Origin: Chlorokybus atmophyticus
Taxonomy: Eukaryota; Plantae; Mesostigma and Chlorokybus algae
DNA: 64,000 bases
Assembly: GCA_009103225.1 (NCBI GenBank)
Contig: RHPI01002090.1
Coordinates: forward strand, 830,414 to 894,413
Direction: 5' to 3'
Shown here: one piece after another, positions 3,044-10,979 of the stretch
How the letters are laid out: every line of letters begins with the position of its first letter
Numbering within the stretch: the stretch's first letter is position 1
Program-made: the position numbers and the translations under genes
Notes under the pieces: generated by a model
Databases searched by the model: none
The model's input: only the letters and a program-made list of their open reading frames with translations
Told to the model about the DNA's origin: nothing

Positions 3044-3495
3044 CAACCCCACCACCCAACCCCACCGCAGCACCTGACTGCCACTGGCACCCCAACCCCT
3101 AGCACACTGCACTGGCAGGACTAGCGGCATTGAACCACTACTGCCCGTGAGGGCGAGTCGCGGCAGGCATGCCAGCAGTAGCATACTGCTGACGTAGGCG
3201 ATGCAACCCTGGCTGCGTCAACAGCAGCACGTAGTGCAAGGAGCGCACGTACTGCAAGCAGGGAGGCGGCAGGAAAGAGGCGGAGAGAGAGGGAGACAGA
3301 GGAGGGGGAGTAACTACGCATGTTGACTAACGGGGCAAGGGCTTAGCGAAGGTAGCTTCCTAGTATGTATAGGTAGCCCGGTGGTGTAACAAGTTGTTGT
3401 TTGCTGGCGTGTGCGAGTGCGCTTGTGTTTGCATGTGTCATGCATGTGCACAATGCAATGGGGTCACATGCATAGCATTGCATATACGCTACACA
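3044..3495 (+). repeat. 5' pseudo-LTR of the PLE (452 bp, intron-less version)
   Basis: By eye identical to 6737-7267 except for a missing 75-nt block and a 4-nt indel. Confidence 0.95.
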
Positions 3496-3784
3496 CACTG
3501 CCCTGGTTGGTCAGTCCGACCGTCCCAAGCCAGAGGCCAGCCCAGCGCGCTTGCGCCATTTTGGGTAAGCGGCTGGCTACCCTATGCTACGGCATGGGTT
3601 CGTGCATGACACACATGCGTTGTGTTTGACGGATGGTCATGGGTGTGGGTGTGCTGTACGTGGTGAGTGCTTGACCGGGAGCACTCTGCATGTGGAATTA
3701 CTTTAGTTGGCCAGTGTATGGTTAGCTGCAAGTAGTGCCCACCCCGTTGGCTCATACATAGCAGTGCTACAAGGGAGCAGCGCC

Positions 3785-6625
3785 ATGGCGTCACCGACAT
3801 GAGATTGGCAGAACATCAAGGCTCGTGTGTTGGATGTGCATGGGCATTGGCAGCTGCCAGTGTTGAGGAGGCTACGCAAGCGAGTCCTACACATTTTGCA
3901 CACACCCTGGCGCCTGTCACCTACTGAAGACGACCACGTCATTTACGTCATCTACCTTCTGACTGGTTCAAAGAAGTGTTACGTTGGCATGACAGTGAAT
4001 TCGGCATTTCAGCGGTTCCAAGGACATTGGAGAGCTGCACAGCATGCTACTGCTACGTTGCTGGAACAAACCATGTGCAAGATACCGGTGCAGTCGTGGG
4101 GAGTGTCACCGGTGGAGCACATCCCGCCCTTGCCCAATGAAACCAACGATGATTGGCACCACCGTGCTGCACAGAAGGAGTGGTTGTGGACCCAGCGTTT
4201 GCGTACGCACGTGCCTCGCGGATACAATGTGGAACATAGCCCCTACAAAAGTGCAAGACTACCACACTGGAGACGCCAACAGTTGAGGAGGCAACCGCAA
4301 CCACGGCCTCATGAACGACCTGGCAGAATATTTGGCTACAGAGATTTCTTCAGGCGCATCCAGAGACTGGCTGAGCGTGTACAACAACAACGCCTGACTC
4401 TGGCAAGTCTGCTCAAGTTCAAGCAGCTGAACTTGTGCAAAATGTTAAACGTACTACAACATACAGCACCACAAGACCTGCACGTGCTGCCCAGTCATGC
4501 TGCAACACTCAAAGAAGCCCTACAGCGTCTACTAGCCAACTACCCAACTGCATTGCCGCAAACCCGCAATGCCAGGTTGCTGATAGCATGCCCGTTTGCG
4601 AATGGCGCTGCTGAGGAACTACAGCTACAAAAACTGCTGTCACACCCCTTGCTGCTGGCAACGCTGCCTGCACACCTGCAAGCACGCCTGGGCCAACCAC
4701 TAGTGGTATGGCGTTGTAGTCAAACGGTGGGAAGAATGCTGTGCAATCGCACAAGGGAGCTCCTGACATCAACCGCCCTGCAGCAAGTACACATCATGTC
4801 GGCTGCGCAGTGTGTGTGTCAACAACCCAAGTGGAGAACACAGCTGCATGCAGATCTGCATCATGTAGTGAGCTGTGATTACAACCGTGTGACATGCTCG
4901 GACGTGCTGCGCACCATACTGCAGCGTGGGGCCAAGTTTCGGAGCCAGGTGCCGGCTGACGTCGCCGTGTGTTGGCCAGCAATCACATCAGCGGTGTCGA
5001 GTTTTGCAAGTGACCTGGAGGAGAAGTGGGGCCAACCTTTCGTGCTACAACAGTGGGTAACAACATTGTTGTCGCTGGTACGCCAACGTGCGGATGCCAT
5101 TGCCGCAATGCCTGAGTACCAGAGACAAAGCCAGGCACCAGATACTGTGGCGCCGTGGGATGCTGCAGCTTTGAAGCTCTTGCACCGTGACTTTATCATT
5201 ACGGAAGTTGACAAGTGCACCGGCACTCTGGTGGCGGTCTGCAAGAAACATTATTGGCTGTGCTTGACACAAGAGCTGATGACAGAGACATATGAACGTG
5301 AAGATGCACCAGCCCAAGCAGTGCTGCAACGGCATGAACAATGGAATCAACAGCACAACTACTGTACAGCGAAATTGCGCCAACAGCCAAAGCTACCGCA
5401 CTTGTACCTGTTGTTTAAGCTGCACAAGAATCCGCCTCAGCCGCGCTTCATAGCAGCGGCGCGTGACACTTCGCTGGCGGATGCTAGTGTGTGGCTGAGC
5501 AGAGGCTATCAATGTATGACACCTATTTGGCATCAGCTGTGGGAGGAAGTAGTGGGACTGCCAGCAATACAGCACAACTGGATTATGAAGGATTCAGGCG
5601 CTTTTGGGAGACTGCAAACGGCATTGAACACCACACGCACGCTGCGAGACAAGCGCCAGCATTTGGTACTGCGCACTTTTGACTTCTCCACCCTGTATAC
5701 ACGCATACGACACAGCGATTTACTCCAGCGCATGCGCCGCTTGGTGGATGCCACGTTTCACATGCGGCACCAAAGGACCTGTGCTACACACTTGCACTTG
5801 ACCGTGAAACAAGATGGCTCCGTACAGCACCATTGGACAGCAGCAGCACAGTACCGAACGGATGAGGAGGGCCATTGGCGAACATTCACTGCTGCGTCCA
5901 TGCATGAAGTACTGGCGTTTGTGTTGGACAACTTGTTTATACGCACGGCGAGTGATGAGCTGTACAAGCAGCGCGTGGGCATCCCCATGGGCAATAGTGC
6001 GGGCGTACACTTAGCCAACGGAGACTTGTTAACATATGAGTTGGAGTTTATGCAGCGCTTGCGTCAGCAGGGACACGTACAACTGTTGCAACAATGTGCC
6101 CACGGCATCTTGCGCTACATTGATGATCTGTTTGTCGTGGGAGTACCAGATTTTCAGCAACTGCTGTGCATGGATCCGCATGTGCCCGGAGGAGGCTTGT
6201 ACCCGCAAGACAGCCTCACCGTCACACAAACAGCTGTGGGTACAAAACTGCCATTTTTGGACTTGGAGGTGTTTCAAACTGAGGACGGCATCTGCACCAA
6301 ACTGTACAGTAAACGAGACTTGCCAGCCTACTCCGCTATACCGTGCCACCGCGCGCCGTTGCCAACCTCAAACACCCCACGCGCTGTGCAGCTGGGTGTC
6401 ATCAGCTCGCAGTATGCGCGCTTCACCCGCGTTTGCACATACAGAGCACACTTCCTCACAGCCATGACGGACTTATTGCACGCCATGCAACATGATGGAC
6501 ACCCTTTGAACAAGCTGCTGACTACCCTGAGGCAACGCCTACTGCGCAGCAAGGACTATGTTTACTGTACACCACCAATGCTGTTGTACATGATGGTGGT
6601 GAAGAAAGTCAAGCAGCAACCATAA
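3785..6625 (+). CDS. PLE polyprotein: GIY-YIG endonuclease + CxC + reverse transcriptase + thumb; one in-frame TGA at 3800-3802
   Basis: VIYVIY..CYVGMT..RF..H and E..W..RLRTHVPRGYN (GIY-YIG); AQCVCQ (CxC); RTFDFSTLYT, QRVGIPMG, LRYIDD, LPFLDL (RT motifs). The frame is open from 3803 to 6625. ATG 3785 (gccATGg) is in the same frame. Confidence 0.88.
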
Positions 6626-6736
6626 CGCTGACGACACAGTGCATCTGCCGGCGTTACACACTGCTGGACAAGCATCATGCGCGGGGAGCAAGCTGCATGG
6701 TAATAGCAGCTTGCCCGTGCGAAGGACGTGTCACTC

Positions 6737-7267
6737 CAACCCCACCACCCAACCCCACCGCAGCACCTGACTGCCACTGGCACCCCAACCCCTAGCACAC
6801 TGCACTGGCAGGACTAGCGGCATTGAACCACTACTGCCCGTGAGGGCGAGTCGCGGCAGGCATGCCAGCAGTAGCATACTGCTGACGTAGGCGATGCAAC
6901 CCTGGCTGCGTCAACAGCAGCACGTAGTGCAAGGAGCGCACGTACTGCAAGCAGGGAGGCGGCAGGAAAGAGGCGGAGAGAGAGGGAGACAGAGGAGGGG
7001 GAGTCCGTCTGCTGTCTGCTACTGCTACCGCTCAGCCTCACCCGGTGCCTAACTGTTGGAATCGCCATTGTGTACAGGTAACTACGCATGCATGTTGACT
7101 AACGGGGCAAGGGCTTAGCGAAGGTAGCTTCCTAGTATGTATAGGTAGCCCGGTGGTGTAACAAGTTGTTGTTTGCTGGCGTGTGCGAGTGCGCTTGTGT
7201 TTGCATGTGTCATGCATGTGCACAATGCAATGGGGTCACATGCATAGCATTGCATATACGCTACACA
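6737..7267 (+). repeat. 3' pseudo-LTR of the PLE (531 bp, retains 75-nt intron-like block 7003-7077)
   Basis: Direct repeat of 3044-3495. Confidence 0.95.
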
Positions 7268-7936
7268 GCTGAATTGTTAACATATTCTGTGGACAAACGC
7301 CACCAGCCAATGCTTGGTCGTGCAAGTATATGTTTGCTATAACATGTGAAATATGCTAGACGAAGAAGTCATCCACAAAGCGAGACACACCCTGCACTCT
7401 TTGCCCTATAACTTATATACCTTATGCACATAATGCAAGCGCCGGCTGACCGGGTCTCCAACGCTGAATGAACTCAAACTCATGTGTACAAAAAACTCAT
7501 GTGTGAGTAGGAAGAAATTTGCAACGAAAACACCTGCGGGTACGCCCATGGGGATACAATTGACTTGCTTGTGAAGTTAATCATGCGCTGTTTGAACATG
7601 CTATCACGAACATGAACTAAATTTGTGCGGCCGCTCACTGCATGCACCGTCTTTATGCTCATGAAGGGATAAGGGGTGGCGTTGGGGAGTATAAAACGCA
7701 TTTGGCTTGACTTCACATTGTCCATGTCCCATAGGATATGCATGTGGAGTACCGTATGAATGCAACATAAGCGCACTTGGGCTGGTAAAAGGCTGCAGAT
7801 TACCAGCACACTCTGCAACAGTTTAAAGCAGCGCAAAGTACACCAAAACTATCCTGAGGTACAAGGCAACTGTGCAGTGGGTGTAGCTGTAACAGCCGGA
7901 TTGGTCAAACAATGTTACATAGATGAGCTACCAACG

Positions 7937-9946
7937 TCAAGCCATGCGCAACTCATAATTGCCAGCCATGGTAATATATCGGACCCATGGCAGAGCCTGA
8001 TACCCACTCTTCTCTATGATTTTCAAATAACGCACCTGCGCAATGTGTAAACAAGTGAGCTGCTATGAAGACAGCCTGCTGGCAAACTCGTATGGTGGCA
8101 TTGCGAACCAGCAGCTGCAGCAGAATAAATGACAAGCAGACCTGAATGCCAGACACCGTGAAATAAGGAATCTCGAACTTGACACGAATGGGTGGCTTCT
8201 TCTCCGGAGCACCATCATCTTCCGCAGCAACGGACGGCAGGGAGAATCGTGCACGAAGCACATACTCCTTGCCACCTGGAAACGACTTGATCTTCCACAG
8301 CAGCGCTTCTTGCTCTGGGGCATATGTTGCACTGCCCATGCTCGCACGCACAGCTGGTGTGGTTGCATCAGCCGGCACCGGTAGTACAATCTCCACACTC
8401 TACCGTGATGTGGACCACATCAGTGTCCACGCCACCAGAATGGGCGCTGCAGCAAAAATGACAATGTCTGCTCATGCTTGCCTGTGCTGTTGAGCGCTCT
8501 TTAAATTGACTGCGGGCCTTGACCAGATACTCCACGCGACTCCGACTGTGTCTCTCCACAGTGCACTCAACCCAGATCAGGGGACGCACCTGGGTGCCAA
8601 TTGGGGTAAGCTTTCAGGTACTGGCGACATGCAACCCAACAGATATCACTCAAGGACTCCATGTACCCATGCAGGAACTACTGTTCCCAACCCACCTGTG
8701 TGCTCAGCCGGTATGTCATGAGATCGAATGCTCCATCCGGTGGTATGAATGATATAGTGCGGTCATTTTCAAATCGCGCCAACCGCACGCACCTGTGAGT
8801 TGATGGTGACTGTCAGCTGGGGCTTTGTATTTCTGCCACTACTTGGCTGACAGGCGGGTACTAGCATTCAACTAAAGCTTACTGATGAAACTTGATGTCA
8901 TCCAGCTCCACCGCTTTCCCCTTGGAGTTCCTGCCCTGGGCTTCCAACAAAACCTTATCGTTGAGGCCAAGCTTGCACTCAGGCATGCCGCTAAGGTATG
9001 TCCTGAGTTTGAGTGCGCCAACAACCTCAGAACGTACAAGGGTGCCATTGCTGTTCACCAGCAGGTTGACACTTTCTACTACATCCAGGAACACCTGTGC
9101 CAGCACTGACATGAGCTTGTATGGATCATGCGCATGCGTGGCCATATAGTGCAGTCTACTTGTCAACAAACCTCGTTCTTCTTGTATTTGATGCCCTCTG
9201 AGCGCCAGGATACTGCATTTGTGACAGCCATTGGTGGGCGTTGTGTAATTTCTGCCCTGTGAGCATCTGTCTTAATAAATTCACTGAGGATCTTAGCCTC
9301 TGTGTACTGGGGATAGCCATAGTCCATCATTTCATCCAGCAGCTCGTAAACAATCACAAAATTGTCACGCAGGGACTCTTCATTCAGCTCTTGAAAGTAG
9401 TGGTTGAACACCTGCAGATGCATGCAATCAGGATGTCCGGCAAAAAATGCAGATGGCATGGCGTAAGAGTCTGCATGCCTACCACAGCCAAATGCAATGC
9501 AAGCCTCACCTCAACAAGCTTATGCAGGAAGAGCAGCAAAGCTACTACATTGGCGTTGACACGAGAACACGCCATCAAGAACAGATTGGAGTGACGAATG
9601 TACACGTAAGTGACACCATCGTCGTGAATGACGGGCCGGAGGTCGCTCTCATTCTGCATGGCACATACGATCAACAAAATAGACTGGCCAGAGATAACAT
9701 TTACATGCAGTGGTTGTATCATGAGAAGTTCAAGTGCACCGGCAACAGGTTGAGGGTATGCGTCAGGCTGTGCGGTATCATGTTCAACCCTAGACGCCAG
9801 TCTGCATTGCATTGGATGCTCACCTCGGCCTCTGTGACTTTGGCCATGAAGCGCTCCACAGTGTGGTTGGAGACATCTCCACGGTAATCACGTGAGATTA
9901 AAATGCGACCCTTCAGATCAAGGACGTACACAGCAGACGCAACCAT
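7937..9946 (-). CDS. AP1M: AP-1 adaptor complex mu subunit (mu1-adaptin), multi-exon
   Basis: MVASAVYVLDLKGRILISRDYRGD; EESLRDNFVIVYELLDEMMDYGYPQ; VFLDVVESVN; LSGMPECKLGLNDK; YFTVSGIQ|VRYLKIIEKSGYQALPWVRYIT. Confidence 0.95.
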
Positions 9947-9998
9947 TGCAGCTGCTCTTGTAGTCTAGCTATGGCGTTTAATTTCTAGCTCTGCTTTG

Positions 9999-10656
9999 CT
10001 ACACGGCCTGGAGGGACGGTTCCTTCTTGTTTGGCGGCCTCGCCTTGACGGCAAGCGACTTGAGCACTTGGGATATGGCTGTGGGAACAACGTCCAACCG
10101 TACCAGTTCCAACAGCTGTTGAGCACACAAATCCCAAGTCAACAATAAAGTGCTATAGTGCAATTCGCTGACCGTTGCTATGCAATGACCATTCCTGTCT
10201 AATGCCGTGCGTCCAATGCTTGCACACGTACCACGTCGAAGATGTCTTGACGTAAATTGAGCCCGCTCAGCAATGTCAGTTCCTTAAGAGCCACAGCAAC
10301 TGCACCATGCACACATGATGTAAGCAGCATGTCCAGCTGCTTATGTCACGAACACTCCAAGCAAGCTACTTGCCAAGGTCAAAAAATCCCTCAAGCCAGT
10401 ACCAAAGCAAGATTGCCACGATCTGCGATGCTCGACAAATGGATAACCTACACAGTCCGAGGAAGAGGCAACGCACTGACGATTGGACCACTCTCAGGAC
10501 GCTAACTGAGGTGTTAAAATAAGTGCTACGATTCTCAGACTCAAACCGTTGCTGCACTGCAGTGGACAGCACCAACAGCTTGCAACGGTGGCAGGATCTA
10601 GTTGCAGTACCTTGCTCAGGGGTGAGAGGCTGTTGCACCGAAGGCAGATCGGCCAT
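9999..10656 (-). CDS. MZT2: MOZART2/MZT2-like gamma-tubulin ring complex microprotein, 76 aa, exons 10656-10611, 10299-10232, 10115-9999
   Basis: Three exons join in phase at GT-AG sites to give MADLPSVQQPLTPEQVAVALKELTLLSGLNLRQDIFDVLLELVRLDVVPTAISQVLKSLAVKARPPNKKEPSLQAV*. The core matches the recalled MZT2 pattern L.ELA..AG..ID.DVFKILVDLLKLNVAP.AVFQMLKSM. Confidence 0.78.
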
Positions 10657-10979
10657 GCGTAGTTGATTCGGATGTAATGTCCCTCTCTGCTTGCTCCCCC
10701 TCGTCAGCTGCCGCCGCCGCCGCCGCTACCAGGCCCCCCGAGCAGGCCTGCTACGTGGCAGTGCTAGGGTTTCCAACCAAGGAAACGAGGTAGTTCGTGT
10801 CAGCGCAGTGCGATTGCTGGCCTCAATGACGGTGGCGGGCAGCGCAGGGGTGCTTGCCGCGGCACACAGGCAAGTCAGCGGCATATTGCACAGGCGGGCA
10901 GCACAACGCGCAGTTGGTTAAGCTCGTGACATTCTTGTGCTCGACGGAAATAACTCGCTCCCTGCGTGCTCCCTCCCCC

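Follow-up and report, generated by a model that had tools for sequence, protein, structure and literature searches.

Does the minus strand of this locus in Chlorokybus atmophyticus carry two neighbouring genes, or a single gene with two cistrons, and by which route would ribosomes reach the second of them? In the window, i.e. the whole stretch of 64,000 nucleotides that was analysed, a three-exon ORF for an MZT2-like protein of 76 aa (10656..9999, minus strand) is followed on the same strand by the coding region of an AP-1 mu subunit (eight exons, 426 aa). An earlier note on this DNA had proposed a bicistronic mRNA bearing the signatures of leaky scanning. On the evidence presented here, it is quite likely that Chlorokybus possesses a true bicistronic gene here, located in the nuclear genome, and that MZT2 and AP-1 mu are produced from one mRNA by leaky scanning.

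Layout of the locus and evidence for one spliced transcript

All coordinates refer to the window, and all features lie on its minus strand. The 5' UTR (10657..10742) comprises at least 86 nt, as delimited by the ends of the RNA contigs, and leads to the ATG of ORF1 at 10656-10654 (context ACGC-ATG-G), which is the earliest ATG along the transcript. ORF1 has a total length of 231 nt (76 aa) and consists of exon 1 (10611..10656), exon 2 (10232..10299) and exon 3 (9999..10115). The conserved MOZART2 core is divided between the last two, with its first half in exon 2 and its second half in exon 3, which also holds the tail and the TAG stop codon (10001-9999). Both introns of ORF1 are of the GT..AG type, and their splice joints are confirmed by the RNA contigs (10611|10299 behind exon 1; the joints of exon 2 are found in all four runs). 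A spacer of 52 nt (9947..9998), which is 54 nt long in the relative X4, separates ORF1 from ORF2. The latter starts with the ATG at 9946-9944 (context GCA-ATG-G) in exon 1 (9824..9946) and continues in exons 2-4 (9653-9507, 9408-9170, 9092-8881) and exons 5-8 (8790-8693, 8586-8482, 8399-8140, 8033-7937, the last one including the stop codon), all of them joined in RNA. Its coding sequence amounts to 1281 nt (426 aa), and the intron at 8400-8481 is of the GC..AG type. The 3' UTR (7761..7936) has a length of about 176 nt, with contig ends at 7761 (X1), 7771 (X2) and 7739 (X4).

The coordinates on which the proposal of a bicistron had been built proved to be correct: the MZT2 stop codon (9999-10001) lies 52 nt before the AP-1 mu ATG at 9946, on the same strand and out of frame (283 mod 3 = 1). 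An in-frame TAG is located 21 nt 5' of the AP-1 mu ATG, and a second stop codon follows six codons past the stop of ORF1, so that no fusion protein is possible. We considered a fused or frameshifted MZT2-AP-1 mu product and rejected it, since the spacer contains stops in both frames and since neither the length of the spacer nor the frame of one ORF relative to the other is constant between lineages.

The RNA evidence comes from four short-read runs (X1 to X4) of two studies, with X1 and X2 belonging to different ones, in the form of Logan short-read contigs. X3 and X4 are 90-95% alike and represent divergent relatives that share the structure of the locus. In X1, X2 and X3, the whole locus is covered by a single spliced contig each (1847, 1799 and 1802 nt), from which nine introns have been removed and which spans 10742-7761, 10725-7771 and 10665-7818, respectively. 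For X4, one contig holds the MZT2 exons together with the spacer and exon 1 of AP-1 mu. The section from ORF1 exon 3 across the spacer to ORF2 exon 1 (9824-10115) is uninterrupted in the contigs of each of the four runs. That two genes are bridged by one contig is no proof of a single transcript; furthermore, rare isoforms are dropped from short-read contigs, and neither transcript ends nor transcript levels can be read from them. The contig of X1 ends at 10742 directly at Illumina adapter letters and that of X2 reaches 10725, and the 5' end of the RNA is probably located near 10742. The spliced contigs of four runs and two studies thus support the proposed single transcript with MZT2 followed by AP-1 mu, and we infer that both ORFs reside on the same individual molecules throughout.

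Identity of the two proteins

Exon 3 of ORF1 alone has MOZART2 (PF12926) as its sole Pfam family match, with 13.5 bits (E 0.066) at a gathering cut-off of 23.3. Its PDB matches are MZT2A/B only, and its ten best Atlas matches all belong to the MOZART clan. Exon 2 alone gave no Pfam or PDB match and no usable match in the Atlas look-up. Both exons are related to the ORF1 of a Pyramimonas-type contig (L001), with 74% identity over 19 aa for exon 2 (tblastn E 9e-8) and 74% identity over 31 aa for exon 3 (E 2e-11). This full-length relative matches Pfam MOZART2 with 43.9 bits (E 2.1e-11), a full-length ORF1 relative has MZT2A/B as its only PDB matches (E 1e-7), and PF12926 is carried by 31 of 34 relatives. 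An identity as MZT1 was considered and rejected, as the HMMER matches are limited to MOZART2 and MZT2A/B; the Atlas features give a joint MOZART1/2 clan. A further protein, P0034, is a weak relative encoded on an intron-rich contig and gives no information on this question.

Comparisons between algal lineages reveal the constraint acting on this protein. The cores of ORF1 from L009 and L014 differ by 15 synonymous and no non-synonymous changes, and omega is 0.27 between L001 and L026. These substitution patterns indicate purifying selection on the protein encoded by ORF1. ORF1 thus encodes a real MZT2-type protein, and the selection lends indirect support to its translation.

Human MZT2A/MZT2B (GCP8) is a microprotein of the gamma-TuRC and binds to the N-terminal helical domain of GCP2. 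Like the human protein, the algal ones are small and helical, and the MOZART2 core can be aligned without gaps (algal residues 19-62 to residues 54-97 of 7fad_B). However, the algal proteins have only about half the length (69-76 aa compared to 158) and lack the long basic tail, and the methionines in the core of animal MZT2 (..QMLKSM..) are replaced by valine or leucine (..QVLKSL..) in the AP1M-linked algal forms. MZT2 has been called deuterostome-only in reviews (PMC6281477), and its presence in chytrids was reported only in 2026 (PMC13358043). MOZART2, often termed deuterostome-only, proves to be widespread across green algae.

A word search with the window ORF that holds exon 3 yielded no candidate in the protein collection, and the Chlorokybus MZT2 ORF is therefore absent from this collection. 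The 38 aa of exon 3 also gave no match among 1.8 billion representative targets, for which purpose the query is too short to be informative. The lack of MZT2 in the Chlorokybus protein set points to an unannotated gene and to upstream cistrons being systematically overlooked by annotation.

The exons of ORF2 match, colinearly and exon by exon, Pfam Clat_adaptor_s and then positions 16-259 of Adap_comp_sub. They score 98-113 bits with AP-1 mu compared to 31-63 bits with AP-2 mu and still less with the mu subunits of AP-3 and AP-4, and they are identical at 423 of 423 residues to an annotated JGI Chlat1 protein of Chlorokybus atmophyticus (P0071). By these matches, ORF2, with a longin-type domain at the N-terminus and a mu-homology domain at the C-terminus, is identified as the mu subunit of the AP-1 adaptor.

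Distribution of the pair

Conservation of the pairing in related algae, which the earlier note had named as a check, was found on transcript contigs of Pyramimonadales. MZT2 precedes AP-1 mu on intron-free, transcript-sized contigs with spacers of 34-137 nt (L001, L026, L027, L009-L013 and L014-L015). Eighteen contigs in all, among them L009-L013, encode the MZT2 protein P0004; they stem from a number of JGI metatranscriptomes and of Logan runs. Named hosts of the pair are Pyramimonas obovata, Pterosperma sp. CCMP1384 and a Pyramimonas sp. of the CCMP2087 type, and it also occurs in two further marine-algal transcript lineages and on one compact genomic contig. Both ORFs are located on one transcript contig in at least five lineages besides Chlorokybus, as judged from short-read assemblies. 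The poly(A) signals TGTAA and AATAAA, looked for in the 3' UTRs of relatives, told nothing about taxonomy.

The pairing is absent in Klebsormidium and in those compact marine genomes in which MZT2 is followed by DUF6823; the arrangement is therefore not essential. Members of the MOZART2 family also occur as stand-alone genes in other algae, and the relatives found by the word search included none from land plants. The pair appears to have been lost in much of the streptophyte lineage. Taken together, comparison of the loci indicates that MZT2-AP-1 mu is an old, selected two-gene arrangement.

Depletion of ATG and methionine and the context of the start codons

Over the 283 nt between the starts of ORF1 and ORF2, there is not a single ATG in any frame, be it in an exon, across an exon junction or in the spacer. 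The expected number is 3.7 based on composition, 4.3 based on uniform letters, as in the earlier note, and 6-7 based on the local density (32 ATGs in the 1281 nt of ORF2). The gap is the longest ATG-free run of the transcript, the second longest having 163 nt, and each of the 999 windows of 283 nt within ORF2 contains at least one ATG. The probability of finding no ATG at the Chlorokybus locus is 0.02 by shuffling and 0.22 by the conservative permutation of ORF1's own codons. For this locus alone, the depletion is only suggestive.

The comparison across species gives a much clearer result. In seven AP1M-linked lineages, one extra ATG was found between the two starts where about 25 are expected (Poisson P ~2e-9 for six lineages), which makes the depletion highly significant. 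The control loci, in which MZT2 stands before DUF6823, contain 32 ATGs compared to 32.3 expected. Internal methionines are absent from all AP1M-linked MZT2 proteins, whereas the DUF6823-linked ones possess one to three of them. These differences indicate that ATG and methionine are selected against in ORF1 only where AP-1 mu follows. The MZT2 family, being free of ATG and methionine only where AP-1 mu depends on scanning through it, would therewith provide a clean evolutionary control for leaky scanning. Internal methionines are also lacking in the MZT2 proteins P0008, P0027, P0028 and P0032, for which AP-1 mu is predicted to lie downstream.

The contexts of the start codons fit into this picture. 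The start codon of ORF1 in the window is flanked by C at -3 and G at +4, that of ORF2 by G at both positions, which confirms the previous description of a weak and a stronger context, with strength judged by the general eukaryotic rule and not by a species-specific Kozak consensus. The start context of ORF2 is the same in the relatives X3 and X4. Across the lineages, ORF2 always has a purine at -3 and, except for L002, G at +4, whereas ORF1 in every lineage lacks one of the two key features (purine at -3, G at +4). Five relatives combine an ORF1 that is without G at +4 with an ORF2 that has this G as well as the purine at -3; the ORF1 of L002 carries C at -3. The suspected signatures of leaky scanning are thus supported by the AP1M-specific depletion of ATG and methionine together with the start contexts across lineages.

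Translation of the two ORFs and alternative explanations

From one promoter, one capped and spliced mRNA of about 1.83 kb would be produced, which would contain, in this order, the 5' UTR of about 86 nt, ORF1, the 52-nt spacer, ORF2 and the 3' UTR. Scanning 43S complexes would reach the ORF1 AUG first. Because its context is sub-optimal, with C at -3, only some of them would initiate there and give rise to MZT2, while the rest would keep scanning. Because the 283 nt are free of other AUGs, these complexes would encounter none in any frame until they arrive at the optimal AUG of AP-1 mu. Both ORFs are probably translated in this way, with leaky scanning rather than reinitiation as the presumed main route to ORF2. 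Since the stop codon of ORF1 is located upstream of exon junctions, the mRNA would also be a potential target of NMD.

It is rather unlikely that the locus is only partly polycistronic, in the sense that a monocistronic AP-1 mu mRNA, starting in MZT2 exon 3, in intron 2 or in the spacer, exists next to the bicistronic one and provides much of the AP-1 mu protein. Gallaher et al. describe many loci with both forms (PMC7896298), and contigs are blind to transcript starts and rare isoforms. In X4, the contig with the AP-1 mu body has a mean word depth of 147 compared to 107 for the contig with MZT2 and exon 1, but the parts of a gene cannot be ranked by depths of this kind. In X1 and X2, no contig pointed to an alternative 5' exon or to intron retention, and the strong, lineage-specific purge of ATG and methionine from ORF1 would not have been kept unless AP-1 mu depends substantially on ribosomes scanning ORF1. 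Some of the AP-1 mu mRNA may nevertheless be monocistronic.

That ORF2 of a bicistronic mRNA is translated mainly by termination and reinitiation, following either ORF1 itself or a very short uORF, we consider unlikely. The depletion of AUG would also fit such a mechanism (PMC11892635), yet it spans the whole of ORF1 and not just the region near its stop codon. With its 77 codons, ORF1 is long in this regard, as the efficiency of reinitiation drops with the length of the uORF, and in Auxenochlorella the output of ORF2 in vivo is inverse to the strength of the ORF1 context (PMC11892635). The situation differs between the lineages: the 5' UTR of Chlorokybus contains no uORF and no ATG at all, whereas in Pyramimonadales a uORF of 4-16 codons is located just upstream of or across the ORF1 AUG. 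Because of this adjoining uORF and the purine at -3 of ORF1, reinitiation or uORF-mediated bypass may contribute in Pyramimonadales.

It is very unlikely that two independent, overlapping monocistronic genes have been merged by the assemblers, with MZT2 being polyadenylated via the ATTAAA of the spacer and AP-1 mu starting just 5' of its ATG. The hexamer, which had been pointed out as a possible argument against the bicistron, is indeed present 17 nt past the MZT2 stop (9982-9977), but it is not conserved, as it reads ATTTTA in the relative X3. The general caveat regarding contigs that cross two genes applies here; however, the same artefact would be needed in four Chlorokybus-type runs and again in independent assemblies of no fewer than five further lineages, whose spacers measure as little as 34 nt. 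Moreover, the genome is not compact, with introns that measure 77-311 nt and intergenic distances of kilobase size, and a merger leaves the AP-1 mu-specific depletion of ATG and methionine in ORF1 unexplained. Finally, ORF1 resembles long conserved-peptide uORFs in position and size, but it is most improbable that it is a mere regulatory uORF of AP-1 mu whose peptide serves no purpose in itself, in view of the strong purifying selection on its protein sequence and the membership in the MOZART2 family, which is encoded by stand-alone genes in other algae.

Leaky scanning from a bicistronic mRNA is hence the reading that we prefer. As to its origin, it is conceivable, albeit somewhat doubtful, that the bicistron dates back to the common ancestor of Chlorophyta and Streptophyta, has been kept for about a billion years in the flagellate-forming Chlorokybus and Pyramimonadales and was broken up elsewhere, and that MZT2 has been reshaped by its role as an upstream cistron, with all methionines and out-of-frame ATGs purged. 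If this holds true, the locus represents a natural experiment in which constraints of the translation mechanism are written into a protein sequence, and it would hint at a selected co-dosage of components of the gamma-tubulin complex and of AP-1 trafficking.

Comparison with known bicistronic genes

Bicistronic genes of green algae that rely on leaky scanning are characterized by a short ORF1, a short spacer and a short 5' UTR, a weak context of ORF1 and a depletion of AUG, with published medians of 291-357 nt for ORF1, 40-183 nt for the spacer and 54-83 nt for the 5' UTR; for chlorophyte bicistrons, leaky scanning has been shown experimentally (PMC11892635). The locus described here closely resembles the green-algal bicistrons (Gallaher et al. 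2021, PMC7896298; Duenas et al. 2025, PMC11892635) with its ORF1 of 231 nt, ORF2 of 1281 nt, spacer of 52 nt and 5' UTR of about 86 nt. It also shares the weaker context of ORF1 compared to ORF2, the depletion of AUG before ORF2, the colinearity kept across species and the absence of an obvious functional link between the products. There are differences, too. The earlier note had referred to the polycistronic loci described in chlorophyte algae, and the hallmarks do match, but Chlorokybus is a streptophyte alga and thus outside the chlorophytes studied there. MZT2-AP1M is known from short-read contigs and not from Iso-Seq or Ribo-seq, and its ORF1 is split by two introns, with seven more following after the ORF1 stop.

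The terms MZT2/MOZART and AP1M/adaptor/clathrin are absent from the main texts of both papers and from the portion of their supplementary tables that was covered (PMC7896298, PMC11892635), and a literature search for MZT2 as a bicistronic gene or for polycistronic genes of Chlorokybus found nothing relevant. As far as these texts go, MZT2-AP1M is a further example of the known green-algal bicistrons, and the pair itself is not contained in the texts cited. With it, the range of scanning-dependent bicistronic mRNAs, which were characterized in chlorophytes, would be extended to an alga from one of the first branches of the streptophytes. In addition, the 52-nt spacer and the AUG-free ORF1 might serve as a template for two-gene cassettes in algae and plants.

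Similarities also exist to the Drosophila loci stoned and Snapin, which, as summarized in PMC11892635, possess an AUG-depleted upstream ORF in a non-consensus context and a downstream ORF reached by leaky scanning. According to the same source, stoned encodes a component of vesicle trafficking, as does AP-1 mu here. However, neither the genes nor the lineage are related to the present ones, and in Drosophila the upstream ORFs are much longer (PMC11892635).

A parallel in arrangement is the bicistronic CDC26-TTM3 transcript, which is reported from green algae as well as from land plants (Lorenzo-Orts et al. 2019, as cited in PMC11892635). According to that account, a small protein related to cell division is likewise encoded upstream of an unrelated larger one on a single mRNA, and the arrangement likewise spans the split between chlorophytes and streptophytes. 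The position of the ORF1 stop 5' of exon junctions, which would make the present mRNA a potential NMD target, is a further similarity. Apart from the different genes, the two cases differ in that MZT2-AP1M has not been kept in Klebsormidium. MZT2-AP1M would therewith be the second pair, after CDC26-TTM3, that is common to both sides of this split.

Results

In Chlorokybus atmophyticus, an MZT2-like (MOZART2-type) ORF of 76 residues (ORF1) precedes an ORF for an AP-complex mu subunit (ORF2), both on the minus strand. ORF1 consists of three exons (10656-10611, 10299-10232 and 10115-9999) with GT..AG introns and ends with a TAG at 10001-9999. After a spacer of 52 nt (9998-9947), which contains an ATTAAA hexamer (9982-9977), the ORF2 ATG follows at 9946 in a different frame. 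An earlier note, made from the sequence alone, had described this gap, the shared strand, the differing frames and the hexamer, and all of them were found again. It had also pointed to an ATG-free stretch of about 280 nt between the two start codons. The distance is 283 nt and holds no other ATG in any frame, counting exons, both junctions and spacer (the ORF1 pieces were joined by script for this count, while protein searches were run exon by exon). The contexts agree as well: ORF1 has the weak one (C at -3, G at +4) and ORF2 the stronger one (G at -3, G at +4).

Spliced contigs of the locus were available from four public RNA sequencing runs (X1-X4; one organism label, two studies). In three of them a single contig begins 5' of the ORF1 ATG and finishes in the AP-1 mu 3' UTR: 10742 to 7761 in X1 (1847 nt), 10725 to 7771 in X2 (1799 nt) and 10665 to 7818 in X3 (1802 nt). 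The three ORF1 exons are spliced, the stretch 10115-9824 (ORF1 exon 3, spacer and ORF2 exon 1) is uninterrupted, and seven further AP-1 mu exons follow. X4 has two contigs, one with ORF1, spacer and ORF2 exon 1, the other with the AP-1 mu body, connected by the same splice joint. In total nine introns are missing from these contigs, which therefore represent RNA: eight of the GT..AG type and one GC..AG (8400-8481, minus strand), whose removal is seen in every run. The proposal that MZT2 and AP1M share one spliced transcript is supported by these short-read contigs spanning both ORFs, although such contigs are no proof of single molecules.

The X1 and X2 sequences match the window exactly. Similarity drops to 90-95% in X3 and X4, which are divergent relatives sharing its architecture. 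The spacer hexamer reads ATTTTA in X3, and the X4 spacer is 2 nt longer. Among the differences listed for both runs, none creates a new ATG or alters the ORF2 context, and those in AP-1 mu exon 1 are synonymous. Illumina adapter letters directly beyond 10742 in the X1 contig suggest a real RNA 5' end there; the resulting 86-nt leader contains no ATG. About 500 nt past the AP-1 mu 3' end lies a reverse-transcriptase-type ORF of 932 aa (3827-6625, plus strand, within 3044-7267), and positions 7300-7700 are covered by no RNA contig in any of the four runs.

The ORF2 exon translations match Clat_adaptor_s and then positions 16-259 of Adap_comp_sub (Pfam) in colinear order, and score 98-113 bits with AP-1 mu, 31-63 bits with AP-2 mu and lower with AP-3 and AP-4 mu. 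All eight align in order to residues 1-426 of protein P0071, with 423 of 423 positions matching; EukProt names this protein jgi/Chlat1/3955 (Chlorokybus atmophyticus genome portal). The sequence matches confirm that the host is Chlorokybus, a streptophyte alga and not a chlorophyte.

For ORF1, the exon-by-exon evidence is weak, but consistent in direction. Exon 3 gave MOZART2 as its sole Pfam match (E 0.066, under threshold), three PDB matches in all, each to MZT2A/B (E 0.65-0.77), and nearest Atlas clusters belonging in ten of ten cases to the MOZART1/2 clan. A word search with this exon in a collection of 5.8 billion proteins yielded no protein sharing words, and an exhaustive search with its 38 residues found nothing. 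When the exon 3-containing ORF of the window was used to scan contigs from metagenomes, two loci emerged. The intron-free contig L001 (1784 nt) carries a complete 76-aa ORF with 74% identity to window exon 2 and to exon 3; it scores 43.9 bits against Pfam MOZART2 (E 2.1e-11, cut-off 23.3) and matches MZT2A/B alone in PDB (E 1e-7 to 4e-6). Since this relative passes the MOZART2 cut-off and matches MZT2A/B, ORF1 can be regarded as an MZT2-type microprotein. A word search with a full-length relative returned 34 small proteins, 31 of them with PF12926. Chlorokybus ORF1 (9999-10656, minus strand) is apparently unannotated, as it is absent from the protein collection for this alga, unlike AP-1 mu of the same locus, which is present in EukProt (Chlat1/3955). 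MZT2 is deuterostome-specific according to reviews (PMC6281477); its presence in chytrids was reported in 2026 (PMC13358043).

Retention of the pairing in other algae, proposed in the earlier note as a check, was found in Pyramimonadophyceae (Chlorophyta), to which Pyramimonas obovata, Pyramimonas sp. CCMP2087 and Pterosperma sp. CCMP1384 belong. In L001, the MZT2 ORF (21-251) is followed by a 36-nt spacer and a 427-aa AP-1 mu, which is listed as 100% identical to that of Pyramimonas sp. CCMP2087, although the sequences are distinct. The same order occurs, with spacers of 34-137 nt, on transcript-sized, intron-free contigs: L026 (MZT2 P0002; AP-1 mu UniRef A0A7S0R0U6, P. obovata), L027 (P0013; AP-1 mu of Pterosperma sp. 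CCMP1384 in EukProt), L009-L013 (P0004, found on 18 contigs in total from three JGI metatranscriptomes and Logan runs) and L014-L015 (P0003, two Logan runs). The genomic contig L002 (GC 0.68; MZT2 from 178 to 471, AP-1 mu 106 nt on) indicates a very compact genome that still keeps the pairing. Its MZT2 to AP-1 mu stretch is ATG-free over 400 nt, and the stops of AP-1 mu and of a convergent 218-aa gene lie 25 nt apart (1861-1886). Further MZT2-like proteins without internal methionine are P0008, P0027, P0028 and P0032, the first two and the last on contigs of about 1-2 kb; all four are predicted to be upstream cistrons of AP-1 mu as well.

The pairing is not universal and has been lost or rearranged in several lineages. 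No MZT2-like coding sequence was found in the 10 kb upstream of AP-1 mu in Klebsormidium nitens. In marine contigs of high GC content and gene density, from Tara and other metagenomes, the gene downstream of MZT2 (P0005, P0010, P0022, P0023, P0024) is DUF6823 and not AP-1 mu; it lies on the same strand at a distance of 87-225 nt (L003-L008 and L016-L022, e.g. L021:2084-3094 and L017:6001-7107). This synteny is kept in at least four MZT2 lineages of compact, GC-rich marine picoeukaryote contigs.

In Chlorokybus alone, 3.7 ATGs are expected after ATG1 from local composition and 4.3 from uniform composition (roughly 4 in the earlier note), and 6-7 at the density of ORF2 (32 in 1281 nt) or of the entire window. 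The probability of finding none is about 0.02 (Poisson or shuffling), and 0.22 under a conservative control permuting ORF1's own codons. The gap is the longest ATG-free run in the transcript (runner-up 163 nt), and none of 999 windows of this size within ORF2 is ATG-free. Since the depletion at this single locus is only suggestive, the argument rests on comparative data. Across seven AP1M-linked lineages, about 25 ATGs are expected from composition and one was seen, in L026 (none in the window, L001, L027, the L009 and L014 groups and L002); without L002, the Poisson probability is about 2e-9 for the remaining six. The AP1M-linked MZT2 proteins lack internal methionines; in them, ..QVLKSL.. 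takes the place of the ..QMLKSM.. core seen in animals. In contrast, the DUF6823 control loci show 32 ATGs against 32.3 expected, and their MZT2 proteins have 1-3 internal methionines. Since the depletion is absent there, MZT2 and DUF6823 are probably two ordinary genes, and the depletion is tied to AP-1 mu downstream.

At its start codon, ORF2 shows a purine at -3 without exception and G at +4 in each lineage but L002. ORF1 invariably falls short at one of these two positions: -3 is C in Chlorokybus and L002, and in the remaining lineages +4 is C or A. ORF1 is under purifying selection: its core differs between L009 and L014 by 15 synonymous and no non-synonymous changes, omega is 0.27 between L001 and L026, and the spacers diverge freely between lineages.

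Discussion

Selection for ribosomes that scan through ORF1 would be expected to leave just this pattern of ATG depletion: they would pass through the otherwise AUG-free ORF1 and reach the AP-1 mu AUG. In Pyramimonadales, reinitiation may add to this leaky scanning. Their short 5' UTRs carry uORFs of 4-16 codons directly before or across the ORF1 AUG (L001:11-61, L026:32-64, L027:18-53 and 69-86, L009:11-28, L014:47-61). In L001 and L026 the uORF runs over the start of MZT2 in a different frame. These uORFs could steer ribosomes past ORF1 to AP-1 mu. The Chlorokybus leader, however, has no such uORF. A monocistronic AP-1 mu mRNA may also exist beside the bicistronic one; this would be compatible with the short-read contigs, which span both ORFs, but are no proof of single molecules and are blind to ends, levels and rare isoforms. 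Frame-dependent mechanisms are ruled out, since spacer length and frame relation vary among lineages. A read-through or fusion product is impossible, because a TAG in frame with the ORF2 ATG stands 21 nt before it and the ORF1 stop is backed up by another one six codons later.

Green-algal bicistrons translated by leaky scanning are marked by a short ORF1, spacer and leader, by start contexts that are weak for ORF1 and strong for ORF2, and by a scarcity of AUGs ahead of ORF2 (PMC7896298; PMC11892635). MZT2-AP1M shows the same hallmarks; it is not named in the texts and available supplementary tables of these two papers. CDC26-TTM3 is the sole bicistron described as common to plants and green algae (PMC11892635). 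NMD sensitivity has been reported for it, whereas for MZT2-AP1M it is only inferred that the mRNA may be NMD-sensitive, because termination at ORF1 leaves seven exon junctions downstream. Like CDC26-TTM3, MZT2-AP1M crosses the chlorophyte/streptophyte split, though with the losses and rearrangements described, and it would be the second bicistronic pair to do so.
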